DNA of 64,000 nucleotides from Macrostomum lignano (GCA_002269645.1 NIVC01000151.1:310001-374000), one strand, 5' to 3'; positions 321 to 42,800 are shown, numbered from the stretch's first letter. Made by a program: numbers and translations. Notes: a model not told the origin generated them from the sequence alone.

Positions 321-659
321 GAGTGACCTGGCAAATCAGCTGGCAATGTGTGTCACCTGGCAGATCAGCTGACAATGTGGGTCAGTGCCAAACTGATTGA
401 CAAACTGGCTGGGGGGGGGGGCATCTGCGATGTTGATGCGATGAGGCGCGCGGGAGGCCAATGGGATCTGAGACGGGCCAATGGGATCTGAGACTGGCTG
501 GGGCCATCCGAAGTCCCAAAATAAAAGCTGGTGCAGAGGCTCCCACCATGGAGCTCTCACTGACTCCGCCGGGCCGCTCAGCGAACTCAAAAAGCCAAGT
601 TCTCAGCTCGCATTATTTACTGTACTGCATTTCCATACAAGCAGAAGCAGCCCGGTTCG

Positions 660-1620
660 ATGGCTCGGTCTCTCTGTGAGTTTCCATGAGTTATCCTGCA
701 GTGAAGAAGCGCAGATAAAGTTAATAAAGTTTAGGATTTGGCATTTCGGCATTTCAGTTTGGCAGCTGCTGTTCTTGGCCGCCGCCTTCGCCCTCGCCTC
801 CGCGGGTCGCCTCCACGAGGAGTTTCCTGGTGAGCCTTCTGTTTAAACAAATCATAAGAGACAAATACATGTACGAACAAATTAACATTGGAACATTGGG
901 ACATCATCCCACACCAGCGCTGCGGCTCTTCTGCCCATCCCGCTGGCTCCTGAGCGCATGCAAGCGCGCCAATACTGTATGCAGACACGCCCTGAGGCAA
1001 ACTCTCACACTGGGTGAACTGCTCACCTAAACTGCTCACCTAAACTGCTCACCTAAACTGCTCACCTAAACTGCTCACCTAAACTGCTCACCTAAACTGC
1101 TCACCTAAACTGCTCACTTAAACTGATAACCTAAACTGCTCACCTAAACTGATAACCTAAACTGCTCACCTAAACTGATAACCTAAACTGCTCACCTAAA
1201 CTGCTCACCTAAACTGATAACCTAAACTGCTCACCTAAACTGATAACCTAAACTGCTCACCTAAACTGATAACCTAAACTGATAGCCACTCACCTAAACT
1301 GATAACCTCAGCTGCTCACCTAAACTGCTCATTAAAGCTGCTCTTCCTAAACTAACTTGTCAGATACCGACGCTCTGGACGGCCCTGGTGCCGAGGAAGA
1401 CGATCTAGCGAGGCTGCTGCCGCTGCGCCAGCTGGCTCGCGACTACAAGAGCAAGAGAATGTCGGAATTTGTCGGCAAACGGATGTCGGAATTTGTCGGC
1501 AAACGGATGTCGGAATTTGTCGGCAAACGGATGTCGGAATTTGTTGGCAAACGCCCAATGAGTCGAAAGCGAATGTCGGAATTTGTCGGCAAGAGAATGT
1601 CGGAATTCGTCGGAAAATAG
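660..1620 (+). CDS. Neuropeptide precursor, 114 aa, with six MSEFV-amide copies (EFLamide/TRH-like)
   Basis: Exons 660-675, 758-829 and 1364-1620 are joined by GT-AG introns with matching phase 1/1; branch point ACTAAC at 1351. Protein MARSLFWQLLFLAAAFALASAG-RLHEEFPDTDALDGPGAEEDDLARLLPLRQLARDYKS-KR-(MSEFVG-KR)x4-PMSR-KR-MSEFVG-KR-MSEFVG-K*. It has a signal peptide, acidic spacer, dibasic sites and Gly amide donors. Confidence 0.9.
1010..1350. repeat. 13-bp minisatellite (CTGCTCACCTAAA)n in neuropeptide intron 2
   Basis: Direct observation; variant unit CTGATAACCTAAA is interspersed. Confidence 0.95.
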
Positions 1621-1842
1621 TAAGCCGCTGAGCGGAGCCACCCAGGAGAAGAGTGAAGCAGCTGAAAGCACATTTGCTGGACATTTCCCTTGTCGCGATG
1701 GCGAACGCAGATCTGAAAATTCAATAAAGCAGCCCCGATGCGCCCTCTTGGATGTCGCAGTTAAAAAGTTATGTTTACAATTTTGAATTCCGTTGATTTA
1801 AAAAAATCGATGTCTCTCAATAAGAGTTCGAGTTGGGACCGG

Positions 1843-3119
1843 TGTTAGAGTTTAGGATCTCCGCGTTTTAGGGTCTCCGCGGTTTTTCTATATGAAAATT
1901 ATAGCTACTTCTATGTACATCGAGATTGGCACCCCAAAGTGTGAGCAGTCTTGCGTAACTTTCAATAGGCTTTGCACATTTTGGAGATCAGCTTTGTACT
2001 CATATTTTATGGGTGGCGGGAAGCGCTGTAAACATTTACATTGGGCAGATGATAAGAAAGGTTTGTGCTGTGTGATTTTCGTCGATTTCTGCATTTCAAA
2101 GCTTGATGGCTTCGCTCAATCAAATATTTTTCTACGTCCTAAACAATGAATATACGCAGGTACCAGCCAGATTGGACGCCAAAGATAAGGCCAACTTAAA
2201 AAGACGCATTAGAGAAAAGAGCAAGCGTTTCTCCATCCATGACGGAGCGCTTTACTACAGGGTGACTAATAAGGACGACAGTCAGCGAATGCGGCCTGAA
2301 GACCATCGCAGAGTACTTTTCACAGAGGAAGAGGTACGGGATAAGATCCGCAGCCTTCACTCGCAAGGAAGTCACGTGGGTGTCAACAGCACAGTGAGCC
2401 TTTTTACTGCACGATACGACTGCGGAGGGGACAGAGTTAGGCTTCGCAATCTTCGCAGGGACGATCGGAAGGGTGGTAAGATGCGATACACTTGGAGTCA
2501 GCAAGTCTACATCGTGACCAGGTGTCTTGGTCAAAACGTGTACAGGCTAGGAGGACTAACCATGTGTGTCAATGGGAAACACCTCAAGAGATGCTTCCTC
2601 CAAGCACCGGCTGAAAGTGCATCACCGGTTTTTCACTAAGCGGACATTTACTTCATTACTTTAACAGTAAACAGTTTTCCATTTAAATACACAGTTGTGC
2701 GAGCATATACATATAAAACTAATGCTACGTTGATGATAAAAATGCCTTTCCACTTCTTATACATGTACGCGTTCAATACCATGACCATTGGTTTTACACA
2801 AATGGGGGGAGATCGGAAACCGGAGATCCTAAACCAGGACTTTGTTTTTGCGGCCCTGACGGAGAGCTGAAACTGGTTTAGAGTCTCCTATGGGGAGATC
2901 TGAAACTGGTTTAAGATCTCCGGGTGCGGAGACCTGAAAATGCCCCGGAGACCCTTAAACGGTTTCAGATCTCCTACCCCGGAGACCCATAACCGTTAGA
3001 AGTCTCCAGGGGAGATCCTAAACGGTTTAGGGTCTCCGGGCGGAGATCCTAAACCGTTTAGGGTCTCCGCCCCGGACACCCTAAACTGACCGGACCCCCG
3101 GAGATCCTAAACCATAACA
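1843..3119 (+). mobile_element. Non-autonomous Ginger-type DNA transposon (Gypsy-like integrase), internally deleted
   Basis: TIRs TGTTAGAGTTTAGGATCTCCG (1843) and CGGAGATCCTAAACCATAACA (ends 3119). 4-bp TSD CCGG at 1839-1842 and 3120-3123. Subterminal GGAGATCCTAAAC repeats. ORF 2103-2639 carries the integrase N-terminal His pair (LHSQGSHVG) joined to the C-terminal GDRVRLRN..RKGGKM..W domain, with no DDE core. Confidence 0.85.
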
Positions 3120-5687: not shown

Positions 5688-7218
5688 AGAATTCAGTCAG
5701 CTGTGTCAGTTCCTATTCAGTCAGCTGTGTCAGCTACTATTCAGTCAGCTGTGTCAGCTCTTATTCAGTCAGCTGTTTCAGCTCCTATTCAGTCAGCTGT
5801 GTCAGCTCTTATTCAGTCAGCTGTTTCAGCTCCTATTCAGTCAGCTGTGTCAGCTCCTATTCAGTCAGCTGTGTCAGCTCCTATTCAGTCAGCTGTGTCA
5901 GCTCCTATTCAGTCAGCTGTGTCAGCTCTTATTCAGTCAGCTGTGTCAGCTCCTATTCAGTCAGCTGTGTCAGCTCCTATTCAGTCAGCTGTTTCAGCTC
6001 CTATTCAGTCAGCTGTGTCAGCTCCTATTCAGTCAGCTGTGTCAGCTCCTATTCAGTCAGCTGTCAGCTCTTATTCAGTCAGCTGTGTCAGCTCCTATTC
6101 AGTCAGCTGTGTCAGCTCTTATTCAGTCAGCTGTTTCAGCTCCTATTCAGTCAGCTGTGTCAGCTCCTATTCAGTCAGCTGTGTCAGCTCCTATTCAGTC
6201 AGCTGTGTCAGCTCCTATTCAGTCAGCTGTTTCAGCTCCTATTCAGTCAGCTGTGTCAGCTCCTATTCAGTCAGCTGTGTCAGCTCCTATTCAGTCAGCT
6301 GTGTCAGCTCCTATTCAGTCAGCTGTGTCAGCTCCTATTCAGTCAGCTGTGTCAGCTCCTATTCAGTCAGCTGTGTCAGCTCTTATTCAGTCAGCTGTCA
6401 GCTCCTATTCAGTCAGCTGTGTCAGCTCTTATTCAGTCAGCTGTTTCAGCTCCTATTCAGTCAGCTGTGTCAGCTCCTATTCAGTCAGCTGTGTCAGCTC
6501 CTATTCAGTCAGCTGTGTCAGCTCCTATTCAGTCAGCTGTGTCAGCTCTTATTCAGTCAGCTGTCAGCTCCTATTCAGTCAGCTGTGTCAGCTCTTATTC
6601 AGTCAGCTGTTTCAGCTCCTATTCAGTCAGCTGTGTCAGCTCCTATTCAGTCAGCTGTGTCAGCTCCTATTCAGTCAGCTGTGTCAGCTCCTATTCAGTC
6701 AGCTGTGTCAGCTCCTATTCAGTCAGCTGTGTCAGCTCCTATTCAGTCAGCTGTTTCAGCTCCTATTCAGTCAGCTGTGTCAGCTCCTATTCAGTCAGCT
6801 GTGTCAGCTCCTATTCAGTCAGCTGTCAGCTCTTATTCAGTCAGCTGTGTCAGCTCCTATTCAGTCAGCTGTGTCAGCTCTTATTCAGTCAGCTGTTTCA
6901 GCTCCTATTCAGTCAGCTGTGTCAGCTCCTATTCAGTCAGCTGTGTCAGCTCCTATTCAGTCAGCTGTGTCAGCTCTTATTCAGTCAGCTGTTTCAGCTC
7001 CTATTCAGTCAGCTGTGTCAGCTCCTATTCAGTCAGCTGTGTCAGCTCTTATTCAGTCAGCTGTGTCAGCTCCTATTCAGTCAACCGTCAGCTCCTATTC
7101 AGTCAGCTGTCAGCTCCTATTCAGTCAGCTGTGTCAGCTCCTATTCAGTCAGCTGTCAGCTTCTATTCAGTCAGCTGTCAGCTCCTATTCAGTCAGCTGT
7201 CAGCTCTTATTCAGCTGT
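5688..7218. repeat. 24-bp (with 22-bp variant) minisatellite (CAGCTCCTATTCAGTCAGCTGTGT)n
   Basis: About 1.5-kb array; explains three overlapping 500-640 aa pseudo-ORFs. Confidence 0.97.
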
Positions 7219-7644
7219 GCTGAATCACGTGGGCAGAAAAGAAGTGGAACACGCTTGAAGATTAGAACCTGTCATTCATTCCTATTTGAATTAAAAAATC
7301 AACGCTCTATCAATTAACGCGAGAAGATATCAAAACATGCTTGTATTTCTACTGAGAGTAGGAAAGACAGAATCTTTAGACAAAAATTGAAGTCGATAAA
7401 AAGGTAGGCAGCAGCGAACAGGCGCAAAATTGTAAACAGAGCCGTCTCCGTGACGACCTCTGTAACACGGAGTAAAATATTCGCTGTGATAAACAGATAA
7501 TGGGACTCGAGCTTGCTGCTGGACAAGGCCGATAAAATATCCGAGTCCGCGAAACATGAATTATGTCTAAATCGGTGCTAAAAAATTCATATTGTGGACA
7601 AAAATTCACAACACCTACCTTCCTTACATTTTATATGCTGCACA

Positions 7645-8106
7645 GATTCCACTGTCAGACTGTACAGATCCCACTGTCAGACTGCACAAATCCCACTGTC
7701 AGACTGCACAAATCCCACTGTCAGACTGCACAAATCCCACTGTCAGACTGCACAAATCCCACTGTCAGACTGCACAAATCCCACTGTCAGACTGTACAAA
7801 TCCCACTGTCAGACTGTACAGATCCCACTGTCAGACTGTGCAAATCCCACTGTCAAACTGTACAGATCCCACTGTTAGCTCGTAGACTGTACAGATCCCA
7901 CTGTCAGACTGTGCAAATCCCACTGTCAGACTGTACAGATCCCACTGTCAGACTGTGCAAATCCCACTGTCAAACTGTACAAATCCCACTGTTAGACTGT
8001 GCAAATCCCACTGTCAGACTGTGCAAATCCCACTGTCAGACTGTACAAATCCCACTGTCAGACTGTGCAAATCCCACTGTCAGACTGTACAAATCCCACT
8101 GTCAGA
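7645..8106. repeat. 22-bp minisatellite (CCCACTGTCAGACTGTACAAAT)n abutting the transporter stop codon
   Basis: Direct observation; the last unit contains TCA 8102-8104, which is the TGA stop on the minus strand. Confidence 0.95.
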
Positions 8107-10010
8107 CGTGCACATCCGCAGCCACCTGCAGGTGCACCGCGCCAGCCGACTGTCTACTCAACCTTGAGGCGTCCTCCGAGCCGGAAGCCGTGGCAGTGGC
8201 GGCAGTCTCCAAGCCCGGCCGCCAGTCCCCCTCGCTGCTGCTCAGCTCGCTGTCGGAGTCGTCGTACGAGGAGGCCACGGAGGCGGTGGCTGCAGCGGCG
8301 CCAACTGCGCTAGCAATTTCGCGCCCGGCGCCGGAGAGTCGTCGCGCGGCGTCGGAGGGGCGCCTCCGGCCCAGCAGGGAGTCGCTGAGGAGGTGCAGCG
8401 GCGCGGTAAGGGAGGATCGGAGGCGCAGCCAGAGGAGGCAGTAGAGCAGCAGGGCGAGCAGCTGGAGGCCGCACAGCAGCAGGAAGCCGAGCTGCAGGTG
8501 GTCGGCTGAGGCGCTGGCCGGGGCGATCCAGCGGCCTACGGGCGGGCGGAGGCGGGGAGAGTCAGCTGGGAGCCTCTGAGTCCTGCGCCAACTGGGTAGC
8601 CTTCAAGAAACACCAGTCTAGAAAGCTAGAGACCATTGGGCAAAGCTTCACCCCTACTCAGCTGCTCTGCCTCTACTCAGCTACTCTGCCTCTACTCAGC
8701 TACTCTGCCCCTACTCAGCTCCTCTGCCCCTACTCAGCTGCTCTGCACCTACTCAGCTACTCTACCCCTACTCAGCTGCTCTGCTCCTACTCACGGGCAA
8801 CGAACACCGCTGTGAGCCCTAGCGAGAGCGCCCGGCCGATGGCGAAGAACAGAATGAAAAGCCCGATGGTGCTGCCGAGGCGGCTGGGCCGGGTGAGCAG
8901 CACCAGGATCTCGTAGCCTGTGGAATTGATGGAGAACAGAGGATACTGGGATTGTGATCATATAGAATTAGTAGAATCCTATCTCATTAGGAGTCATGAT
9001 TGGGATCAAGGTGGGATTAGAACTACAGACAGACAGTATTTAAACTATAAGGGATTTAGGTAGAAATCACAGAACTGGGATCCGGGAGAAGGGATCTGGG
9101 AAAAACAAGTGTGATTATGGAACAATCAGGATTGAGGATTTGGGGCTGGGGATCAAGCTGGAACAATCAGGATTGAGGATTTGGGGGCTAGGGATCAAGC
9201 TGGAACAATCAGGATTGAAGATTTGGGGGCTAGGGATCAAGCTGGAACAATCAGGATTGAGGATTTGGGGGCTGGGGATCAAGCTGGAACAATCAGGATT
9301 GAAGATTTGGGGGCTGGGGATCAAGCTGGAACAATCAGGATTGAGGATTTGGGGGCTGGGGATCAAGCTGGAACAATCAGGATTGAGGATTTGGGGCTGG
9401 GGATCAAGCTGGAACAATCAGGATTCAGAATGAGGCTGGGGATCAAGCTGGAACAATCAGATGCAGAGTCAGAATCAGAGGTCCGGTTTTTGGGGGAATC
9501 CCAAAAGCGCACCGGACACAATGACGAGGATCTCGGACAGGGCCATCAGCAGGTAGGCAGGCAGGACGATGGGCGGCTGATAGGCCGAGCGGTCGCGAGC
9601 GAATTCGGTCACCGCCGCCACCAGAGCGCTGGCCGCCAGCACCAGCTGGCCGATGCCTGAGGAAGTTGCGGGGCGGATTGCAGAGCTGACAGACAGACAG
9701 ACAGACAGACACTAATACGGACAGACGGACAGAGAGACAAATACTAAGACAGACACTAAGACAGACAGACGGACAGACAGACAGACACTAAGACGGACAG
9801 ACGGACAGAGAGACAAATACTAAGACAGACACTAAGACAGACAGACGGACAGAGAGACAAATACTAAGACAGACACTAAGACAGACAGACGGACAGACAG
9901 ACAAACACTAAGACAGACACTAAGACAGACAGACAGACAGACAGACACACAGACACACAGACACACAGACAGACAGACAGACAGACAGACACACAGACAG
10001 ACAGACATTA

Positions 10011-10071
<61 letters not shown>

Positions 10072-10158
10072 CCAAGACAGACAGACAGACAGACACTAAG
10101 ACAGACAGACAGACACTAAGACAGACAGACACTAAGACAGACAGACACTAAGACAGAA

Positions 10159-10191
<33 letters not shown>

Positions 10192-10192
10192 C

Positions 10193-10246
<54 letters not shown>

Positions 10247-13200
10247 TCACTCACCGAAGCGCCAGGCCATGTGGTGCAGCTTGAAGAAGCGGCTGCTGGC
10301 CCAGCACAGCAGGGGCGCCAGCAGGAACACGAAGCCGGGGTCGAACAGGCTGTAGAGATGGTGCTGCTGCTGCTGCCAGCCGCCAGGCATGGAGCGCAGC
10401 TGCAGATCGAGGCAGCTGGTCATCTGGCGATGAGCGGGGCGAAGGAGCGGGTAAGTCAGAGAGCTGTGAGGCAGTCAGCCTCAGCCAGTGAGGGGGCAGA
10501 CCTGAGTGAAGATGGCCACCCAGCAGGCCAGGATGGCCAGCAGGCCCCAGCGGAACAGGCAGGCGCTGGGGTCCTCTTCCACCGAGGCTGCCGCAGGCGG
10601 CTCCGCGGCTGCAACGGCCGGATGATGCTTGGAGCGAAGGCGGCGACGTCCCAATAGGTCGTTCGGAGCCGAAGACCACGGCGCTGAGGGATGGGAGGCG
10701 GCGGGAGAGGATTGAATGAGGACTACTTGAGGACCAGTTGAGTACTACTTGAGGACCAGTTGAGGACTACTTGAGGACCAGTTGAGTACTACTTGAGGAC
10801 TAGTGGAGGACCAGTGAAGGACTACTTGAGGACAAGTTGAGTACTACTTGAGGACCTGTGGAGGACCAGTGGAGGACTACTTGAGGACCAGTTGAGTACT
10901 AGTGAAGGACCAGTTGAGGATTACTTAAGGACCAGTTGAGTACTACTTGAGGACTAGTGGAGGACTATCTATGTAAGGATCAGCTGGGGCGTGGCGGCGG
11001 GAACCAGCAGATGAAGACAGAATGAGGACAGGAGAGTCAGCTGAGGACCAGTGGAGGACTACCTATGTAAGGATCAGCTGGGGCGTGGCGGCGGGAACCA
11101 GCAGATAAAAACAGAATGAGGACAAAAGAGTCAGCTGAGGACCGGTTTAAAAGCATCACGAACGCAGCAGAAATCAAACAGCAGCAGCGGCAGCTCACAG
11201 TCACTGGGCGGCAACTCCCGAATCCAGGGCAAGCCGCAGGCGAGGCCGGCGAAGGCAGCAGCAGCCGCGGCGAAGATCAGCGGGCCGAGCTTCCGGGAGT
11301 CCACATAGGGAGTTGAGCCATAGACTATTGCGTCTGAGACCAGCGCGCCGAGGTTCAAGCAGCAGTAGTACCTGCGCGGGGGTTCGAGTTAGCGATGGAG
11401 GCTTTGGAAGCTGGGCAGGTGATCAAAACTCGAAGCAAATCAACCACTCACCAGGTGACGCAGTTGAAGATGCTGGAGCAGAAGTGCCGCTTCAGCTGCT
11501 GCAGCAGCAGGGCGGGTGCCACGGCTCGGCTGCAGAGGGCGGCCACGGCGAACGGCGGCAGACCGAGGATCAGCAGGAACTGCCGAACCTGCGGGGGCAT
11601 CTTGTATTCAATGTGAGATCTCATCCTGACCGAAATCTCACTCTCATGGAGAGCTCACTCTGATGGAGATCTCACTCTCATGGAGATTTCACTTGGAAAG
11701 AGTGAAAGTATAGGATACCTCAACGATAAGGTACGATATCCCAGCGAGAAAGTGGGAAATCTCAGCGGGTGGGAAATCTCAGTGGGAGGGTATGAGATCT
11801 CAGTGGAAGGGTGGGAGATCTCAGTGGGAAGGTGGGAAATCTTAGCGGGAGGGTGGGAAATCTCAGTGGGAGGGTATGAGATCTCAGTGGGAGGTTGGGA
11901 GATCTCAGTGGGAAGGTGGGAAATCTTAGCGGAAGGGTAGGAAATCGCAGTGGGAGGGTGGGAGATCTCAGTGGGAGGGTGGGAGATCTCAGTGGGAGGG
12001 TGGGAAATCTTAGTGGGTGGGTGGGAGATCTCAGTGGAAGGGTGGGAAATCTCAGTGGGAAGGTGGGAAATCTCAGTGGGAAGGTGGGAGATCTCAGTGG
12101 GAAGATGGGAAATCTCAGTGGGAAGGTGGGAAATCTCATTGGGAAGGTGGGAAATCTCAGTGGGAGAGTGGGAGATCTCAGTGGGAAGGTGGGAGATCTC
12201 AGTGGGAAGGTGGGAAATCTCAGTGGGAGGGTGGGAGATCTCAGCGGGTGGTTGTGTCGGACTGCCGGATATCTGGGAAGAGTTTGGCACACAAAACTCA
12301 CAGCAGATTCTTCGGCAGGGCCAAAGCGGAGAGTGGACAGCAGTATAAAAGTGCAGCCTGGAATATGATAAATTAATTTTTCTTAGTGAAATCCGATATT
12401 TAGCATTTAGTAGCTCGTAAAACGTAATTGTTAAGAGTGCGAGACAGTACAAAATGTACTCACCAATAACGTACAGCACGGTGCCCACAGCCAGCAGCTT
12501 GAACTTGGACACGCGCTCGTCGCCCAGCCAGCCGCCAGCCAGTGGCAGGGCGTCAATCAGCACTGAAGAAAAGTGCAGACAAAATGATTCCGGAAAATAG
12601 CTTGTATTTAAAACTAAATATTTCCGCAATTTCGGGGAAATTATATCTAGCCTCAATAAGAGATCTAAGGCTGCCATTGTTGAACTGTGAGACGCCATTA
12701 TGGATTGGAGAGGCGCCATTATGAATTGGAGAGGCGCCATTATGGATTGGAGAGGCGCCATTATGAATTGGAGAGGCGCCATTATGGATTGGAGAGGCGC
12801 CATTATGGATTGGAGAGGCGCCATTATGAATTGGAGAGGCGCCATTATGGATTGGAGAGGCGCCATTATGGATTGGAGAGGCGCCATTATGAATTGGAGA
12901 GGCGCCATTTTGGATTGGAGAGGCGCCATTATGGATTGGAGAGGCGCCATTATGAATTGGAGAGGCGCCATTTTGGATTGGAGAGGCGCCATTATGAAGC
13001 TGAGGATTCTGAGAGGTGCCATTATGGAGCTGAGGATTCTGAGAGGTGCCATTATGAAGCTGAGGATTCTGAGAGGTGCCATTATGGAGCTGAGGATTCT
13101 GAGAGACGCCATTATGGAGCTGAGAGACGCCATTATGGATCTGAGAAACGCCATTATGGATCTGAGAGACGCCATTTTGGAGCTGAGAGACGCCATTATG

Positions 13201-13579
13201 GATCTGAGAGACGCCATTATGGATCTGAGAGCCGCCATTATGGATCTGAGAGACGCCATTATGGAGCTGAGAGACGCCACTATGCATTGAGAATGAATCC
13301 CGGCCACAGATCTGAGACGCCAATCAATGGCATGAGGTGCCGCATCAGGTATTCAAGTTCAGTTGGCGCAAACTCACCGCTGATAACCAGAGCATAGCTG
13401 AGTCCCTGAGCAGCCCCGCCAGCCCACTGGAAGCTGGCATCCCACTGCATCACATTGAGAGCAGTGTAGTGCATGCAGCTGCCACCTGCAATCTGCATGC
13501 CCAGCCATACGGTGGCCTGCAGCAGGCGGCGTCGCTTTTTCCATTTGCCACTAAGCAGGGCCTGGCAGCTGCTTATCAT
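8102..13579 (-). CDS. POT/PTR2 (SLC15-like) oligopeptide transporter, MFS fold, about 572 aa
   Basis: Exons 13378-13579, 12464-12562, 12302-12357, 11452-11588, 11199-11371, 10502-10683, 10255-10423, 9513-9656, 8795-8917 and 8102-8535; all GT-AG, phases consistent, total 1719 nt. Motifs [55 protein letters not shown] and [20 protein letters not shown] match POT family signatures. Start codon uncertain. Confidence 0.82.
8650..8794. repeat. About 19-bp intronic minisatellite (CTACTCAGCTACTCTGCCC)n ending at a splice donor
   Basis: Direct observation. Confidence 0.9.
9117..9462. repeat. 42-bp intronic minisatellite (GCTGGAACAATCAGGATTGAGGATTTGGGGGCTGGGGATCAA)n
   Basis: Direct observation. Confidence 0.95.
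9688..10250. repeat. Degenerate (CAGA)n / AGACAGACACTA intronic microsatellite
   Basis: Direct observation. Confidence 0.95.
10718..11140. repeat. About 22-bp GAGGACTACTTGAGGACCAGTT repeats plus a roughly 95-bp direct duplication
   Basis: Direct observation within a transporter intron. Confidence 0.85.
11740..12248. repeat. 21-bp intronic minisatellite (GGGAAATCTCAGTGGGAAGGT)n
   Basis: Direct observation. Confidence 0.95.
12690..13282. repeat. 21-bp intronic minisatellite (GCCATTATGGATTGGAGAGGC)n with graded unit variants
   Basis: Direct observation. Confidence 0.95.
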
Positions 13580-13774
13580 GGGGCCTGGCTTGATGGCGAA
13601 TGCAGCACTGCTGGGGATAAAAATCATTAATAACAAATAAGACAAAATCAATTTAATAGAAGCATTGGCTTCATGATTTCTCTTTTCAACAACACTAAAT
13701 TAGCCAGTCAAGAAATAAATTATTTTAGAAGTTCTAGTAGACTTGAACAAAGGCTCACAAGTTAGCATATAAAT

Positions 13775-14115
13775 GGCCTATCAATTTAAGCTCATAAAGT
13801 GGAGCCCAAGTAACCTATGCGCACAAATGATATGTCATTCTGCTCATAGTGACACTAGGAAGCTGGATTTGGCAAAAAATTACAAAACTTATACCTGGGA
13901 TAGAAGAGAACAAGCAAGGGGACAAGGACAATTGGGGATTCCATCTTAAATAAAAGTCCTTAATTATCCCCTTGCTTGTTCTCTTCTATCCCAAATCCAT
14001 TTTTGTAACTTTTTTTGTCAAATCTAACTTCCTAGTATCATTGTAAGCATAATGACATATCATTTGTGTATATAGGTTACTTGGGTTTCACTTTATAAGC
14101 TTAAGTTGATAGGCC
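13775..14115. repeat. Long imperfect inverted repeat (MITE-like hairpin, arms about 150 bp)
   Basis: 13775-13925 is the reverse complement of about 13965-14115, with mostly transition mismatches. Confidence 0.85.
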
Positions 14116-16529
14116 CTTTATATATTTGGCACAACATAAATAGTATTAAACAAAAAATAAATAGTTATATGCTAGTAAATAACATACAAATATTTATTAA
14201 ATATGATAGAAACATATTTTAGATAAAAGTTTATAAAATTCTTATTAGGCCTACTTTAGTATTTAATACAACAAACTAAATGATTATCAAATATTATTTT
14301 CGATTTATGGCCTATTTAGAAATTTAACATTGATTATAAAAAGGAATCTTTAAAAAATATATAATAGATATAATAGTGTGTTACAGTGTTATATATATTA
14401 GCAATTAAGAACTGAGCTGTTTTATAATAAATAGATGTCAGACTTAAGATTTCTATTAGATAAATTGGTATATGACTTTTACTCTACTATTAATTTGCAA
14501 CTTGTAGCTATTGAGTCTATATAAACTCTATGACTATGTTGTCTATGACATAATACTAATAGATTCGAAACCAATTATTCATAATATAAAAACAATTGAC
14601 TCTGTGCTAACTGCTTCAGCAGGTAATAGTATCTGCAGTTAAGGGAAGTGTTTTTCATTTGAATAATCTAATTTTGTAATTTAATTATGAAATCTATCTC
14701 CTTGACCTAAATATCCTAGTGACCCTTGGCCTTATTAACGACTAAATCATATTTTAAAAAATTAAGCTTAGGCCATTATTAAAGGTCTAAAACAAATTAA
14801 CTGCTGCAATTTGAGTGAAAAACATTAACTGCTGAGAAATTGACTGCCAGCCAAACAAATGCTAATCTATCTAATTAACTGGCAATGCCAACAAATCCAA
14901 CAATGACTGCAACATATGAACTGCCGAAGATAGGCCTACCCTTATGGTCTAATTTATACCTAACTTATGTCCTATCCTACACCCTAATTCCATAACACTA
15001 ACAAAATCCTATTCTAAATCGTCCGCAGATAATTGCCGTGGTGCTCCTTCCTCCTTGAGGCTTCAGGCTTGAGTTTACGACTTTCAATGAGCGGCCCCCA
15101 TATTGCACAAAAATAACAATCAGTGACAAGTTAAAATGCTGCACTAACTCTTTCTAAGAAAGTATATCTAATGTTAACGATTCCTTTTAAAAACAGTATG
15201 TCCAGGTCCAATTTTTTGTCTGTATTAGAAAAAATAAAAAGCAAGACTGATTTTTGTTACTGACAATTTATTTGGCTTGACAAGTTGTATATATCACAGC
15301 ACATTGTGCATACAGCTAGCATACATGTAACATGTAGCTCGAAAAGTTCACGAAGCACGGCCTGGGTGTGTACATGCACTTAGGTCTGGATGACAGCGTC
15401 AGCCAGCAGGCGATAGGCAAAATTTACAACTATTTGTTTTTAGTTTTCCAGTGCATCGATCGCGCAGCTGTCCTCCATGCAGACACTGGCTGTGTGAGCA
15501 ATGCATGTAATGGCATGTAACTATACTGGGTGCGGATGATATGGTCTGCTAGCTCGGTGATGCTGAAGCAGGATTAAATTGAACATGTAATTTTATGGTG
15601 CAAGCCGTGCAGCTACAGACACTGATCATTTTAGCGCTACTCTAGACATTAATTTTACCGCTACAGGCACGATGTGACCATCCCCCGGTTCGCCTGTATA
15701 CAAGGGTGTACATTTCTTGTAAGCACACTGTACATGTGTATCTGTGTACAAATACATGTCGTCAACAGTCGTGTAAACAAGAGTCTCGTCGGATCAGCTC
15801 TTCGAGCAACTAACGCATAGCTGGTGAAGCGCGGTAGAATTTTCAAGCCATTCTAAAACTAAGGGACCCTTGACCCTGTTCCATGCCAGGCGCCTTCCGA
15901 GTACTTTACTAAGCAATAATAATTAGTTAATACTCAATAATAAAAATCTTGCATCCTCCCTTTCCATCCCGTAGATTGGAGTAGGTTTCAGGGGCTTCGT
16001 GGATTGGATATGGACTGCGGGGCTGAATAGAAGTTGGTCGACGCCACAGGCCCGTGGTCACAGATCACACCCGCCTGAGGGCAAGGCTCTGTAAGGACCC
16101 CTCCGGCTGCTAAAGTGCCTTTGCTGTTCTCCGGGCCTCTGAAGGGGACTGCGGAGGCCATGCCAACAACCCTAAAGAGCAGGCACACCGTCATTTCCCA
16201 TTCTAACGAGGCGAGGGGCCCCGCTCTGAATAATTTCACAGTGGCATGATAATCCGACAAAAACCAGGGCTCAGTTCAAGCTGACACAACAGAGTAAAAA
16301 AATATAATTATAAATAACAATAATAACTAGCGGCATAGCAACTAATCATTCGCTACGCAATAAATTTCAGACACAAGTCTGCTTAAAAACTCGGGCTCAA
16401 AAGGCCTCGGATGTTGCAAGGCCTCTTGGGATTCGTTTGCGCACAATGAAAAAGAAATCAACAAATTTTCGCGGGAGGGCTGCCGGCATATTTTAATCTC
16501 AGGCGTGCGCACTCTCGGTGCCTTGGGGG

Positions 16530-18065
16530 GGGTTTCACTAGGCCGAAATTTCACTTTGCCGAAAGCATCTTCCTTCACAAGGCCGAAACTTCATTAGGCC
16601 GAAACTTCACTTTGCCGAAAAATCATTTTAGCAGGCTCTTTCACTAGGCCGAAAATTCACTAGGCCGAAACTTCACTTTGCCGAAATGACTAGCATGCTC
16701 TTTCATATGGCCGAAACTTCACTAGGCCGAAACTTCACTTCGCCGAAAAATCATTTTAGCAGCCTCTTTCACTAGGCCGAAACTTCATTAGGCCGAAACT
16801 TCATTAGGCCGAAACTTCACTTTGCCAAAATGACTAGCATGCTCTTTCATAAGGCCAAAAATTCACTAGGCCGAAACTTCACTTTGCCGAAAAATCATTT
16901 TAGCAGCCTCTTTCACTAGGCCGAAACTTCACAATGCCGAAAAATCATTTTAGCAGCCTCTTTCACTAGGCCGAAACTTCACTTTGCCGAAATGACTAGC
17001 ATGCTCTTTCATAAGGACGAAACTTCACTAGGCCGAAACTTCACAATGCCGAAAAATCATTTTAGCAGCCTCTTTCACTAGGCCGAAACTTCACTTCGCC
17101 GAAATGACTAGCATGCTCTTTCATAAGGCGAAACTTCACTAGGCCGATACTTCACAATGCCGAAAAATCATTTTAGCAGCCTCTTTCACTAGGCCGAAAC
17201 TTCACTTTGCCGAAATGACTAGCATGCTCTTTCATAAGGCCGAAACTTCACTAGGCCGATACTTCACAATGCCGAAAAATCATTTTAGCAGCCTCTTTCA
17301 CTAGGCCGAAACTTCACTTTGCCGAAATGACTAGCATGCTCTTTCATAAGGCCGAAACTTCACTAGGCCGATACTTCACAATGCCGAAAAATCATTTTAG
17401 CAGCCTCTTTCACTAGGCCGAAACTTCACTTTGCCGAAAAATCATTTTAGCAGCATCCTTCTTACTAATGGTCGAAAGGGTATGTGCACTTTAAGACTGC
17501 TAAGGCTGCTAAAATGATTTTTCGGCAAAGTGAAGTTTCGGCCTAGTGAAAGAGGCTGCTAAAATGATTGTTCGGCAAAGTGAAGTTTCGGCCTAGTGAA
17601 AGAGGCTTCTAAGATGATTTTTCGGCCTAATGAAGTTTCGGCCTTATGAAAGAGCATGCTAGTCATTTCGGCAAAGTGAAGTTTCGGTCTAGTGAAAGAG
17701 GCTGCTAAAATGATTTTTCGGCAAAGTGAAGCCTCGGCCCAGTGAAAGAGGCTGCTAAGATGATTTTTCGGCCTAATGAAGCTTCGGCCATATGAAAGAG
17801 CATGCTTGTCATTTCGGCAAAGTGAAGTTTCGGCCTTATGAAAGAGCGTGCTAGTCATTTCGGCAAAGTGAAGTTTCGGCCTAGTGAAAGAGGCTGCTAA
17901 AATGATTTTTCGGCAAAGTGAAGTTTCGGCCTAGTGAAGTTTCGGCCATATGAAAGAGCATGCTAGTCATTTCGGCAAAGTGAAGTTTCGGCCTAATGAA
18001 GTTTCGGCCTAGTGAAAGAGGCTGCTTTTCGGCGAAGTGAAATTTCGGCCTAATGAAAGCGCCCC
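16530..18065. mobile_element. Foldback-type (MULE/FB-like) non-coding element with TIRs built from tandem GGCCGAAACTTCAC modules
   Basis: Array 16530-17450 is inverted at 17505-18065 around a spacer of about 55 bp. Candidate 9-bp TSD CCTTGGGGG at 16521-16529 and 18066-18074. Termini are G-run and C-run. Confidence 0.75.
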
Positions 18066-18237
18066 CCTTGGGGGATTGGCCCAATTTTCATGTCCAAGCA
18101 ACCAGGGGTCGTGGCGTGAGAGTCAGACGCGTTCACCGTCTTCTGAACAAAGGCCTGGTCTGCTTGAAAGTTCAGTGGCTCCAAGCCTATCTCGAACTCT
18201 ATCCCGACTCTAAAAAACGAGTAAATTGTCAGAGCCG

Positions 18238-20583
18238 TCAGGCTTCAGTGGTGTCATTCTTGGCGTCCGGCTGGCTGTCTCCCTGCGGCGCCTCAGGCTC
18301 TGCCGGGCGGGCGCCGCCCCGATGCTTCAGCAGCGCCCCCGACAACAGTCGGTAGAACAGCTCAAAGAACTCACACAGGGTGAGCAGGCTGCAGCCGACG
18401 TACAGTCCCAGCAGGCCGCCAGTGTCTGCCAGGAAGGCCGTGACCGAGTACGCTGGCGAGATCACCACCTGCGGCGAGGTGGTGCTTCGGGCCACGATGC
18501 GAACGTTGATCAGCGACTCGGACAGGTAGGCGCGAAACTGGGCCTCCGTGTGGGCGGAGTGGTTCCCTGCGGGTCAGGGGCGACCGAGTTGGTTTTATGT
18601 TGATAGTTGATGAGGCCATCAATGACCTGCAACTCTGACTTTGAAACAAGGGAGAGTCCGTATTGGCTTCTGGTGTGCTCGGGACCAGTTTTCTCTGAGT
18701 TCGGTTTTTCTCAACAGCTGGTCCAAACCGCTGAGCATGGACTCACCTATGGATTGGCTTGCGTACCAGCTAAAAAAATGTTCCACTCGCAGTGTGAGAT
18801 GTGGCAGGGTAAAATTTACAAATGCAAATATCTATACTAACTCGTATATATACCTCGATTTTATTCTCCATCTTCTAAAAGTTTTTTTTGATACCACCAA
18901 CGGTAGAAATATAGAGAAAATACGTTTGCAATAGAAACCATGAAAATATGTGCTATACTTTCCTGGTAAATATATTAGTTCTTAGTTAGTCACGACACAA
19001 AAACTTCCTGGATGTCAAACATGGGTCAGGGTGCCTCGCGGTAATGTAATTTTAGGGGAAACGGACTCATGGAAGTACACAGAGCACTTCAAATTTAAGA
19101 CAATTTATTCGAAGGCATCATTAGCGGATACCTATCCGTAAAAACTGGTTTGAGTCTGCTTCAAAGGTTACTCACTCGCCCGGAGCGACCTGGCCATGTC
19201 GATGAGGCGTCTGGTGGCTGGCGTGCTGTATGACGAGCTGCCCATCTCGGCGAAGTGGGCCACCACGGAGCTGCCGATGCTGGGCCAGCGGCTGAAAGAG
19301 AACTCGGCCGAGTAGCGCTGGTAGCGGCACGGCTGCCGGGAGCGGCAGGCCTCCTGCACCTGCCTGTCCAAGTCCGACCAGTTCGTCTTTGTTGTCTGAA
19401 CTACGTTGAACTGGTCGCGGCCGGTCTCGCTCATGTTGAAGCACCTGCTCCGATGAGCAATGCGGTTCAAGTCAGTTGCTGTCACTCACAGTTTATTGTA
19501 CAGACAGAACCCCTACCTGGTTGTGTTCTTCAGGCTCCACGTGAGCGGGAAGCTGAATACCATGCAGCCGTAGGCCTGAGTCACCAGTCGCACCAGGTTT
19601 TCATAGTAGCAGGCGGCTGGGCTGTAAGCAAAGGTCAGCTTTCTGCCCGTGAGGTGATCGCTGAAGTCCACCGCCTCACTGTCGCCCTGGCACTGCTGGC
19701 CGCGCAGCTCCTCGCTGAACTCAGTCTCCTCCATGCTCAGCGCCACCGAGTACGAGTTACTGGGCGCCAGCTGAAACTTGGCCTCGTGCGCGAACGACGG
19801 GTAGCTGCCGACCGGCACGATCAGCATGGTGAAGCCCGCCTCCTGCAGCCGCTCCCGGCCGACGCTTATGCTCCAGTCCTGCAGCGGCACCTCCTCTCCG
19901 GTTGCCGGGCTGCGAATCGGATCCACGCTCCGGCCCGAATAGTTGAACTCGGCAAAGTAGGGGTCGGTGGACAGGCGGAGGTTCACCTGCCAGTTCTCCG
20001 CCACAATTTTCCGCCGGTCATTGTCGGTGAGTCTCAGCTGGAAGCAGACCAGACTCACCGGGTGGCTGAACGGCAGCACCCTGGGAAAGATGGGGAAGCT
20101 GGACTGCGGCCCCATGGTGGGCGTCGCCGTCGTCTGCAGCACAGACTGGGCTCTGCGCTGAGCCAAGAGCCGGTAGGACAGGTGCACCGGCAGCGAGCTC
20201 TGCACCAGACGGGCTCGCAGTTCAATCGACCTCGTCGGTCCGAGACGGGAATCGAACTCGGCGCTGAGATTCGCGATTGCGGTGTTGATCAGCTCCGCGT
20301 CCGCCTGGCTCAGGTCGTGCGGGTAGCTGCCAGAGTACGGATTGTTGGGGCAGAAGTACAGGTCCGGGAACACGAAGGGCACTTTGTCCAGCTCGAACGA
20401 CTTGGTCAGGCCGCCTCCCCTCAGACGGATCACCAGCGTCACGGCGCTGCGCACAAACAGTGCCAAGAAGAGCAGGAACAGCAGAAACCACATCACCTTC
20501 ATCACCCGGCTGCGGGAGGTGGCCACTCGACTGATGCCGTGGGCCGAGCTCTCGGCCAGGGTGTCCATGACAGCACTTGGCAT
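18238..20583 (-). CDS. DEG/ENaC (ASIC-like) ion channel subunit, 554 aa
   Basis: Exons 19517-20583, 19176-19444 and 18238-18566 (1665 nt, phases 2 and 1 match). N-terminal SSAHG motif before TM1 (VMWFLLFLLFL), Cys-rich thumb, and TM2 ADTGGLLGLYVGCSLLTLCE. Confidence 0.92.
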
Positions 20584-21271
20584 CTTGGCGGGAGTTGCGG
20601 CTCTGGAAACTCCAAGTGACGCCTCAGCGAGTTCTCAGCGACGCTTCACAGAGAGGCATTTTATAGCATTGTGCAAAGCATTCCAGCTATCTCATTTGGC
20701 AGTTCATCACCATTGGCCACCAGCTGCGCCCCTCTTCGACCTCGACCAGCGCATAGGCTGGCATGCGGGCATCCGGCCTGGGCGGGTGATGCAGGCTGCC
20801 CTTTCCCACCAAGCCCTGAGGTAATCAAAAATCCAGTCCAAACCAGTCAGAAAAAGTACTGCATGCCTGTTGGGTTACACAAACTGCCGCTGTTTGGCTC
20901 GCAGCTCGCAAGCTCTGCTGCATCCCCTGGCTTAGCGAATTCCCCACATCCAACTGATTGATGCTTCCGCATCTGCGGCTTTTAAACGCCATCATCAGAA
21001 CGCGTCAGAGATGGCACAAATGCTCAATGCTCAATATAATTTGGCAAGCACTGACACAACTTAGAAGCCGTCGAAACTTTGCGAGCCTACATTTTCGGCT
21101 CAATTAGATGGCTAGTCGGTCCCATGTCAACAACGAGGACCGACTTCCGCCAGATACGAGCTGATTGCTCTGTCAACAGGCGCAACAGAGAACTCATGGC
21201 ACCCCAATCGGCAGTTTATCGCCATTGACCCTGCAAACCATGCACCAAGTTTGGGTACTTTAAGCGTTTAA

Positions 21272-39842: not shown

Positions 39843-42800
39843 ATGCTGCGAGACGAATTTGTCGATGAGGTCGCCGCTGCTGTTGGCGGTCTGTGTGACC
39901 ATCGTTGACATGGACGAGAAGCTGTGGCTGGTCAGGCGCTTCGATGACGCGGAGAGCGGGCAGACATAGTTGAAGGGAAAATATCCCTGCCGCTTCGATC
40001 TCTGATTGAAGCCGAACCAGATCTCCGGCTGCTGCTCATCAGGCTGCTGGACCTCCACGATGTCGCCGATCTCCAGGCGCAGCTGGTTGGGGTCAAATAT
40101 GTTGGGATTTCGCTCGTGAGCCACCCGCACCTCGAATGGGAAAGTTAGCTGGCGGAGGGCCTGGAATGAGTTGGGACAAATATCCTCAATTTAGGGAGCT
40201 TAATAATACTCGCAAGAGCGCTGTGAGCACCCTGGCGTAATGTTTTAGGCCCGGGGTCCCACACCCAGCACTGAGGCTACTCTGCCCATTCCACGCACTC
40301 CTGAGACTTGCGGCTCACCTGAAACTTGCTCTCGTCCGACTCGCTGACGGTCACCAGCGACAGGTAGATGGCCGGTACGAGTCCCGACTCGCCGCCGCGC
40401 CGCTTCACCACGTGCCACCAGTCGGGCTCCTCGGTGCCGTCAGCATAACGCAGAGTTCTTAGAAAATAGACGCAGTCACCGCGCCTCAGCGGCAGACTCT
40501 CTTTGGCGTCCTGGCGATTGGGCGGGGGGGGCGAGGCAGCTGGGAGAGCAGTCTAAACATGCATTCACGCATTTTACATTGCTATTCACACATTCTAAAC
40601 ATGCATTCACACATTTTACACTGCTCTTCAGACATTCTAAACATGCATTCACACATTTTACACTGCTATTCACGCATTCTAAACACGCATTCACACATTT
40701 TACACTGCTATTCACGCATTCTAAACAGGCATTCACACATTTTACACTACTATTCACACATTCTAAACATGCATTCACGCATTTTTTACTGCTATTCACG
40801 CATTCTAAACATGCATTCACATATTTTACACTGCTATTCACGCATTCTAACACGCATTCACGCATTTTACACTGCTATTCACGCATTCTAAACATACATT
40901 CACGCATTTTACACTGCTATTCACACATTCTAAACATGCATTCACGCATTTTACACTGATATTCACACATTCTAATAGCTATCGTGATTCACACATTCAA
41001 AGCAGTCCATTCACATATAATAATAGTGAGTCACAAAGCTCATTGCACTTCGCACACTTCGCGCGTTTTCACTTCTGAAAGCGTCATTTATAACAAATTC
41101 TGAATTCATATTTACTGCATTTTCGTAGCAACTTGCAAACGCGTAACTAATCACAAACATTATAAAAAAACTACTCACAAATTGGCCCACCTCACAGTGC
41201 CCTTATTCACACAGAATTCACCAGTTCAAACAGACACCCCATTCAAACAGAATTTATCTCATTCACAGAGAATTTACCCCATTCACAAAGAACTCACCCC
41301 ATTTGTTGTGTGTGGCTTGTGTGCACTAATATTTACTCTGGTAATTTCGTGTACATCTGTGTACTCTGGCCCCCACCCCTTCTATGTACAGTGAAGTTCT
41401 CAACAATATATATCGGTGTTTACCCAGTGTCTGGGTCTAAGAGTTTTCTCGCTCGCTCGCAAACATGACTTGGCATTTATCATAACATGGCGTCGCAAGT
41501 CTAAACTACCTATCCAGTCTGGCAAGCATGGAAGGATTGAGGCCGCCAGAGCCTATGGTTTTTGACACCAATAGGGCGGACAACTGGAGAAAGTGGATCA
41601 AATCGTTCGATTTCTATATGAAAGCTACGAAGAGAACTGAAGAAAACAACGATGTGAAGGTGGCCATTCTGCTAACCGCCCTCGGATCCGACGGTCAAGA
41701 TATCTACTCTACATTTCCTGCAGACAAAGTAGCTACGTACGACGAAGTAGTCGAGGCATTCAAAGACTACTGCGAGCCTCTGTCAAACGAAACATTTGAG
41801 CGCTACCAGCTCCGAACAAAAGTGAAGGAGAAGCTGAGGACTTTGATCAGTTTGTCAGCTCCCTCCGTCAGATCATCAAACGCTGCAATTACAGCAAGCC
41901 AGCTAACGAGGAGACCATCGAGAACAGTGTCCTTCGAGACCAGATCGTCATCGGAGTCAACGACCCAGCTCTGAGGTACCCTGGTGTAGGGAGTTGCAAA
42001 CCATTTGCCAAGTGCACCCAAGGGCACAACATGGTCGCTCCCACTTGCCGGCAAGCCGGACGAAAGCGGTTTGCATTGGAAGCTATCAAGCGGTCCAAAC
42101 CCTCCAAGGCCATCGGCCCTGATGGAATCTGCCCGCTCGTCATTAGGCACTTTGGTCCGAAGGCGAAGGCTGTGCTCCGTAACCTCTTCAATCGCTCAAT
42201 CGCTTACAATGAGATCCCGGCGGTCTGGAAGAAGTCCTTAATCTGTCCCCTTCTGAAGGATGGTAAACCGCAGGACGATGGTGCGTCGTATCGCCCTATC
42301 TCCTTTCTCTCGCCGCTCGTCAAAATTCTGGAGAAGATCCTGCTTCCGCTACTGACTGACCACCTTCAGCTCCCGGCCTGGCAACATGGCTTTCGCCCGC
42401 ACCACTCCACCGTGACCGCCCTCTGCCAACTGGTTGAGCAGATCTGCTCAGGTTTTTGTTTGCCAAAACCTCCGGCCAGGACCGGCGTTAGCGCGATCGA
42501 CCTTCGGATGGCATTCGACTGCGTTGACCACTACGAATTACTCTCTGATCTCGCCGAGTCTGATCTTCCTAACACTGTTAAGGCCTGGCTTGCCAACTAT
42601 ATTCTTGGACGTCAAGCACGGACCGTCATGCGAGACTTTAAGTCGAAGTGGCGGCAGGTTCGCATGGGAGTTCCACAGGGCAGCGCCATCAGCCCGCTTC
42701 TTTTTGCCTTTTACTTGGCTAAAGCTCCTGTGCCATCCAATCCGGCCACTAAACTAATTGGTTACGCTGACGATCTTACCGTTGCCGCTTCATCCCCAAA

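Follow-up and report, generated by a model that had tools for sequence, protein, structure and literature searches.

A 24-bp tandem repeat of Macrostomum lignano probably encodes a multi-copy neuropeptide precursor of the fulicin/EFLamide family

We analysed 64,000 nucleotides of the Macrostomum lignano genome (GCA_002269645.1, NIVC01000151.1:310001-374000; hereafter the window, with positions counted from its first letter) and found that a 24-bp tandem repeat near its 5' end forms part of what is probably a genuine and functional neuropeptide precursor gene of the fulicin/EFLamide family, that is, of the protostome thyrotropin-releasing hormone (TRH) type. Three exons on the plus strand (660-675, 758-829 and 1364-1620), separated by two GT..AG introns, join into a 345-nt in-frame coding sequence for a 114-aa protein, whose translation is MARSLFWQLLFLAAAFALASAGRLHEEFPDTDALDGPGAEEDDLARLLPLRQLARDYKSKR-(MSEFVGKR)x4-PMSRKR-MSEFVGKR-MSEFVGK-stop. 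We are highly confident that this is a real precursor of a secreted, multi-copy, amidated peptide. Judging from sequence similarity, its homology to fulicin and the EFLamides is likely, while the chances that the predicted product, MSEFV-NH2, is a ligand of a G protein-coupled receptor (GPCR) of the TRH-receptor clade are about even.

Predicted gene structure and coding constraint on the repeat

In the output of Tandem Repeats Finder (TRF), the 24-bp period spans 1459-1553, with 4.0 copies and 98% matches, and a second block of it spans 1570-1617. The 20-mer ATGTCGGAATTTGTCGGCAA matched six times with at most three mismatches, in every case inside 1459-1616, against a chance expectation of 0.01. 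The six cassettes differ from one another by 7 nucleotides spread over 6 sites; each change is confined to one copy, and all seven are synonymous (GTC/GTT, TTT/TTC, GGC/GGA, AAA/AAG and CGG/CGC/AGA). With 22% of single-base changes to the repeat unit being synonymous, the probability that all differences are of this kind is 2.7e-5 analytically and 1e-5 by simulation. Control arrays carried just one or two propagated variants, which were missense or nonsense in every frame. Codon-phase bias alone was dropped as evidence of coding, as two control minisatellites showed an equal third-position bias arising from one propagated variant.

The 102 TRF rows merged into 55 arrays that occupy 31.9% of the window, most of them with 12-56-bp units. 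A six-frame scan of the 64 kb revealed no second regular Gly-dibasic or basic-flanked F[VLI]G[KR] array; it additionally picked up three other stretches, two of low complexity and one irregular and without repeats, none of which is an array. Several arrays with a period that is a multiple of three contain no stop codon in as many as three frames of one strand, for example that at 5691-7214 (24-bp unit, 64 copies), and their variation is not of the coding type. The original prediction had presented this locus as the single coding array among many non-coding minisatellites, with a three-exon precursor, six MSEFV-G-K(R) cassettes and synonymous variation among copies. Splicing in silico and TRF bore out all of these sequence statements, including the codon variants listed, and only one of the 55 arrays has such a reading frame. 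The features of the gene are as follows.

518..527, plus strand: possible TATA-like element (AAAATAAAAG), about 135 nt 5' of the ATG, read from the sequence
660..675, plus strand: coding part of exon 1, with the ATG at 660 and 16 coding nt (5 1/3 codons, MARSL and the first base of F6); donor CTCT/GTGAGT
676..757, plus strand: intron 1, 82 nt, GT..AG, phase 1
758..829, plus strand: exon 2, with the remaining signal peptide (to A21, nt 804; predicted cleavage ASA/G) and the propeptide start GRLHEEFP; acceptor tttcag/, donor CCTG/GTGAGC
830..1363, plus strand: intron 2, 534 nt, GT..AG, phase 1, largely a 13-bp minisatellite (1017-1353)
1364..1458, plus strand: acidic spacer of exon 3 (DTDALDGPGAEEDDLARLLPLRQLARDYKS), closing with the first KR site at 1453-1458; acceptor ttgtcag/
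1459..1554, plus strand: four MSEFVGKR cassettes of 24 bp each
1555..1572, plus strand: spacer PMSRKR, in frame, 18 bp, a shortened and diverged cassette with RKR at its end
1573..1620, plus strand: cassettes 5 (MSEFVGKR) and 6 (MSEFVGK) and the stop codon TAG (1618-1620)
1723..1728, plus strand: AATAAA polyadenylation signal, 103 nt past the stop, read from the sequence

The anatomy of a prepropeptide, likewise part of that prediction, is recovered on splicing. In the three-exon model the protein begins with the n-region MAR, a hydrophobic core with a Kyte-Doolittle 9-mer mean of 1.7-2.7 covers residues 4-17, and the site ASA/G after residue 21 satisfies the -3/-1 rule in a heuristic reading that rests on the predicted exon 1. 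Behind the spacer, KR sites alternate with the cassettes, in which Gly serves as the amide donor, and the frame closes with GK-stop; the propeptide contains 10 acidic and 5 basic residues. Both introns have GTGAG donors and pyrimidine-rich acceptors. Since the annotated DEG/ENaC neighbour described below has introns of comparable size, one of about 66 nt and one of about 616 nt that starts with a GTGAGT donor, lengths of 82 and 534 nt are ordinary for this species.

The predicted first exon follows from sequence logic: upstream of the ATG at 660 an in-frame TGA is located at 561, with no ATG, GTG or TTG in between. Three upstream ATGs (461, 481 and 548) are out of frame with it, and an open reading frame (ORF) at 481-846 spans exon 1 and intron 1 and continues into exon 2 in the reading frame of that exon. 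Depending on the transcription start, the upstream reading frames (461-846) are either upstream ORFs or an alternative unspliced reading. If the TATA-like element at 518..527 is used, the ATGs at 461 and 481, and probably that at 548, would lie outside the mRNA.

Processing of amidated-neuropeptide precursors by convertases, carboxypeptidases and peptidylglycine alpha-amidating monooxygenase is well established. By analogy, the 114-aa preproprotein would enter the secretory pathway through its 21-residue signal peptide, prohormone convertases would cleave after the KR and RKR sites, a carboxypeptidase would remove the basic residues, and the monooxygenase would convert each exposed Gly to a C-terminal amide. 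One precursor would thus give six identical copies of MSEFV-NH2 (calculated [M+H]+ 611.286) and a spacer fragment. The peptide would most likely serve as a neuronal or neuroendocrine signal acting on a rhodopsin-type GPCR of the TRH/EFLamide-receptor clade.

Copies of the gene in protein databases and genomic surroundings

An exhaustive HMMER search with the exon-3 translation against 1.84 billion representative proteins gave 192 matches at E<=1e-3. The best of these (P0003, E = 1.8e-49) was UniProt A0A1I8IB55 of M. lignano, an automatic model named "Conserved plasma membrane protein"; a second automatic model from the same species, A0A1I8FF87 (P0081), is named "Anoctamin". Both contain ...AFALAS..HEEFP/DTDALDGPGAEEDDLARLLPLRQLARDYKSK..., which corresponds to the exon 2/exon 3 junction (EEFP/DTDALDG), whereas genomic read-through of intron 2 would end in ...EEFPGEPSV and a stop codon; both models therefore remove intron 2. 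Exon 2 is 100% identical to residues 144-167 of A0A1I8IB55, and the exon 3 spacer is 100% identical to residues 511-541 of A0A1I8FF87. Thus, gene predictors caught the exon 2-3 structure elsewhere in this polyploid genome, inside misnamed chimeras.

The two models differ from the gene in the window and from each other. A0A1I8IB55 has 3+2 intact cassettes, one below the count in the window, in frame and again with the PMSRKR spacer; its upstream part is a degenerate second copy of the peptide gene fused to an ORF that is also seen in the window at 2103-2639. A0A1I8FF87 enters the +2 frame of the repeat (VGICRQTD) and is either a frame-shifted paralogue or the result of an assembly indel. Since both join exon 2 to other upstream sequence, exon 1 is without independent support from them. 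The original prediction held that ORF callers would miss such a gene, which requires amendment: predictors did take up copies of it, paralogous or allelic, although they fused them into misnamed chimeras, and the NCBI searches described below found no model.

The ORF at 2103-2639 (plus strand; 177 aa from the ATG at 2106) has no Pfam match and is flanked on both sides by arrays of palindromic motifs (GGAGATCCTAAACC / GGTTTAGGGTCTCC) at about 1840-1885 and about 2810-3110. From its sequence, the whole unit (1840-3110) looks like a mobile element. In A0A1I8IB55, 81 residues of this ORF are placed between the degenerate and the intact peptide-gene copies.

Further downstream, a DEG/ENaC gene (Pfam ASC, amiloride-sensitive sodium channel) occupies 18241-20619 on the minus strand. 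Its main ORF (19513-20583, 356 aa) shares 99% identity with BOX15_Mlig031004g1 of M. lignano, which bears out the flatworm origin given in the original prediction; a paralogue elsewhere, BOX15_Mlig032051g2, is 45% identical. The channel family includes peptide-gated members. The gene is situated 18 kb from the peptide gene, and a functional connection between the two was discarded, because proximity was the sole basis for it. Ty3/gypsy-type pol fragments extend over 42031-47346 (plus strand), with RVT_1 at 42031-43878 and 44967-45545, and RNase H, integrase zinc-binding and core domains at 45676-47346. As the reverse-transcriptase domain occurs twice in separate ORFs, these are probably nested or broken copies.

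The window region 7638-21271 is collinear with NIVC01000514.1:233178-255564 (L001; GCA_002269645.1, Mlig_3_7) at 88-97% identity, with minisatellites of different lengths. This fits a second haplotype, a homeologue of the polyploid genome or a different assembly. This part of the contig stops about 6 kb short of the expected homeologous copy of the peptide gene, and no other gene was called in it.

Peptide family and alternative explanations

To classify the peptide family, the best 150 of the 192 HMMER matches were sorted by their dominant cassette. x-S-E-F-[LVIM]-Gly dominates in 35 of them, including arthropod GSEFL precursors (P0038, P0040, P0075 and P0097), precursors with seven FSEFV copies (P0015, P0036) and one with MSEFI/MSEFL (P0017). 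Another 13 have the gastropod fulicin-type cassette x-[YFW]-[ED]-F-[LVIM]-Gly, such as P0006, which also carries FNEFVGKR, the fulicin sequence. In 47 of the 150 the cassette is xRxF[LVIM] (37) or xPxF[LVIM] (10); among them are P0004 and P0005, named PRQFVamide precursors, and precursors of the Mytilus inhibitory peptide (MIP) type. The published core of fulicin/EFLGamide peptides is E-[L/F]-[L/F/V], with the oyster signature (F/Y)S(E/D)FL(M)-amide (PMC8398477), and published work assigns fulicin, EFLGamide and EFLamide to the TRH type (PMC8398477, PMC5818035, PMC7294237). Together with the 35 SEF-dominated matches, this core supports the S-E-F-(L/V) family assignment made from the sequence at the outset, in which fulicin had gone unmentioned.

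The precursor itself combines the family's traits. It has a signal peptide by the heuristic above, dependent on the predicted exon 1; it has six MSEFVG cassettes, five of them followed by KR and the last by K and the stop; and its core, S-E-F-V within MSEFV, is of the E-[L/F]-[L/F/V]-amide form preceded by Ser. The pattern x-[P/R]-x-F-[V/I]-amide of FVamide, MIP and PRQFVamide peptides occurs in none of the copies, all six of which are M-S-E-F-V, and MSEFV-NH2 has neither the N-terminal Gln or pyroglutamate nor the C-terminal Pro-amide of deuterostome TRH. A co-encoded second peptide is frequent but not universal in the family. Nowhere else in the 64-kb window, which includes 659 nt upstream of the ATG at 660, is an F[VLI]G[KR] or Gly-dibasic stretch encoded; this does not exclude membership, because the feature is likewise absent in crustaceans, chelicerates and apterygotes.

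Several points weigh against a functional fulicin/EFLamide gene of the structure proposed here. At the ATG at 660 the Kozak -3 base is T, and the ORF at 481-846 offers an alternative that retains intron 1. The repeat of the paralogous copies in the UniProt models is frame-shifted, which makes these pseudogenes or assembly indels. A word-indexed protein search with the 114-aa precursor gave no match at E<=0.01, a weak negative given that it missed the UniProt model later recovered by the exhaustive search, and one with P0003 matched only itself; neither yielded an NCBI annotated model of the gene. An exact look-up in a 15-billion-protein collection found neither the precursor nor any of five copy-number variants and four ORF variants. 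The top HMMER scores outside Macrostomum belong to the PRQFVamide precursors P0004 (3.7e-28) and P0005 (2.7e-27), and E-values on tandem short motifs are inflated by repetition. The signal for the family is essentially a core of 3-4 residues (S-E-F and an aliphatic amide) that could have arisen by convergence. A planarian prohormone supplement that was searched contains no multi-copy EFVG/EFLG precursor. Finally, all of the evidence comes from sequence, from which we infer that the gene is transcribed with the predicted exon 1, that its product is cleaved and amidated, that neurons express it and which type of receptor it acts on.

Part of these points would be explained if the precursor were real and its peptide amidated, yet not orthologous to the EFLamides, belonging instead to the FVamide/MIP (PxFV/PRQFVamide) group or to a lineage-specific type with a convergent S-E-F-V, and acting on a different receptor. 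Besides the PRQFVamide scores and the 47 of the best 150 matches with xRxF[LVI] or xPxF[VI] cassettes, the FV-amide C-terminus fits such an origin; five-residue peptides are poor in phylogenetic signal, and in the HMMER matched stretches no similarity outside the cassettes, in the pro-region or elsewhere, was seen to any non-Macrostomum precursor. However, MIP and PRQFVamide peptides have P or R at -4 or -5 where MSEFV has S, and S-E-F is identical in FSEFLGamide, oyster (F/Y)S(E/D)FL and arthropod GSEFL, while fulicin too ends in EFV-amide. Moreover, HMMER rank follows copy number more than motif identity. The E-values against fulicin-type and GSEFL precursors are 1e-12 to 1e-26, but the scores behind them sum over repeated 8-residue units, and PRQFVamide/MIP precursors score higher. 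A single gene encodes both types of peptide in annelids and molluscs, where they are considered related (PMC3890597, PMC8398477), and for this reason the non-orthologous explanation, which we regard as rather unlikely, partly collapses into membership of the fulicin/EFLamide family.

Clearly less probable is that the coding exon is real and has another 5' end, without the 16-nt exon 1: translation would begin farther upstream and read through a retained intron 1, or exon 2 would be joined to an exon outside the window or to the upstream gene, which is the arrangement in the UniProt chimeras. The ORF at 481-846 is indeed open through intron 1 in the frame of exon 2, A0A1I8IB55 has another sequence before exon 2 (...RSEGV-WQLLF), and the window begins only 659 nt before the ATG. 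However, it is only in the three-exon model that the hydrophobic segment is N-terminal, with a basic n-region and the ASA/G site; the alternative buries it about 95 residues in. In addition, the donor CTCT/GTGAGT is strong and the intron of species-typical size, the ATG at 660 is the first start codon after the in-frame stop, and the UniProt models are evident chimeras of a degenerate copy, a transposon-like ORF and the peptide gene. Spliced-leader trans-splicing onto exon 2 was also considered as the source of a start codon and dropped, as the leader would not be in frame.

It is very improbable that the frame is open by chance within a non-coding minisatellite, or that the gene is a dead pseudogene: tandem repeats make up nearly a third of the window and many of them are stop-free in several frames, and paralogous copies appear frame-shifted, yet all copy differences are synonymous, an in-frame copy-number variant is conserved at a second locus or allele, and signal peptide, spacer, dibasic/Gly grammar, splice sites, stop codon and AATAAA occur together once in 64 kb.

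Comparison with known peptide systems

The fulicin/EFLamide peptides are an established family, and flatworms are already among its reported carriers: a TRH-type peptide is listed as expressed in the polyclad Prostheceraeus crozieri by a review according to which conserved peptides of this kind were lost from many planarians and parasitic flatworms (PMC13551398). In addition, monogenean flatworm GPCRs group with TRH-EFLG receptors (PMC9645230). The locus is thus a solid annotation gain and no new kind of molecule or mechanism. Pfam gave no meaningful match for the 114-aa precursor. The literature searched, which left out an expressed sequence tag survey by McVeigh et al. 2009 that reportedly covers neuropeptides of M. 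lignano, contained no mention of MSEFV, SEFVamide or this M. lignano gene as a peptide. Conzelmann and Jekely 2012 aligned platyhelminth FVamides, and Schmidtea and Macrostomum are among the species of their figure. A prior description of the gene in M. lignano may therefore exist.

A bolder proposal, which we advance only tentatively, is that MSEFV-NH2 is the endogenous ligand of a Macrostomum orthologue of the TRH/EFLamide receptor, encoded by a stand-alone gene, combining the S-E-F core with the FV-amide end and possibly containing D-Ser at position 2, an idea that parallels the D-Asn2 of fulicin. If true, TRH-type signalling would have been retained in an early-branching rhabditophoran flatworm in spite of its reported loss in many planarians and parasitic flatworms, and a peptide that unites S-E-F, as in EFLGamide, with the C-terminus of the FVamides co-encoded with it in trochozoans could bear on whether both groups go back to one ancestral cassette. 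In any case, M. lignano, for which RNA interference and transgenesis exist, gains a concrete candidate for TRH-type (fulicin/EFLamide) signalling, a system tied to growth and reproduction in other protostomes (C. elegans, snails). For annotation, the lesson is that where minisatellites make up about one third of a genome, an exon for neuropeptides resembles any other tandem repeat; the present one has been absorbed into misnamed chimeras.

One of the systems compared is vertebrate and echinoderm TRH (pGlu-His-Pro-NH2 and relatives). It resembles the Macrostomum precursor in its several very short copies with dibasic flanks and a Gly amide donor. There is no sequence similarity, however, as the Macrostomum peptide lacks the N-terminal pyroglutamate and the Pro-amide, and the sole link is the receptor orthology reported for other protostomes. 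FVamide, MIP and PRQFVamide precursors likewise encode many tandem copies that end in FV-amide and are spaced by GKR in the same way, but with Pro or Arg at -4 or -5 (PRQFV, SREFV, LRDFV, SPMFV) instead of Ser-Glu. They are regarded as a separate group, though co-encoded with fulicin/EFLGamide and possibly related to it. Since PRQFVamide/MIP precursors score best outside Macrostomum, the FV-amide end is common to a second family.

Arthropod EFLamides (x-G-S-E-F-L-NH2; Tetranychus, crustaceans, apterygotes, Locusta, Pyrrhocoris) are TRH orthologues whose precursors hold 4-18 paracopies (PMC7294237), compared with six in Macrostomum. They share the S-E-F core, separation by KR and Gly amidation, and one arthropod-type precursor (P0103) carries GSEFV. 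They differ in the C-terminal Leu in place of Val and in the Gly before Ser, which the Macrostomum peptide lacks. Heteroptera and Locusta splice their EFLa exon to exons of Prohormone-4 (PMC7294237); nothing comparable is seen at the Macrostomum gene.

The annelid EFLGamide has the core x-S-E-F-aliphatic, and annelids are spiralians, as flatworms are. Among the systems compared it is the only one with a published receptor pairing: in Platynereis, FSEFLGamide is the ligand of a TRH-type receptor (PMC5818035). One Gly more is retained in the annelid peptide (..FLG-NH2, from GG), whereas that of Macrostomum would end in FV-NH2, and the annelid coding region lies downstream of that for FVamides, requiring read-through or alternative splicing (PMC3890597), in contrast to the conventional ORF in Macrostomum.

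Fulicin (Phe-D-Asn-Glu-Phe-Val-NH2; gastropods, bivalves) is the mollusc counterpart of annelid EFLGamide (PMC8398477). Like the predicted MSEFV-NH2, it is an amidated pentapeptide of the form x-[N/S]-E-F-V-NH2 from a multi-copy precursor with GKR sites, and the fulicin-type precursor P0006 (FNEFVGKR) matches at E = 3e-26. The two peptides differ at residues 1 and 2, Phe-D-Asn versus Met-Ser. Mollusc fulicin precursors contain many different peptides (PYEFV, PYEFL and others), compared with six identical copies in Macrostomum. In the oyster, fulicin arises by alternative splicing of the MIP gene (PMC8398477), whereas the Macrostomum gene has its own predicted signal peptide and the window shows no MIP-type exon. 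The peptides most like MSEFV-amide are encoded by precursors with seven FSEFVGKR cassettes (P0036, P0015) or with MSEFLGKR/MSEFIGKR (P0017), found at the loci L002 and L003 (Logan ERR6349664 and ERR6349663) and L004 (JGI 3300005037). Altogether, the sequences suggest that fulicin (FNEFV-amide) and these unnamed FSEFV, MSEFI and MSEFL precursors are the nearest relatives of MSEFV-amide.

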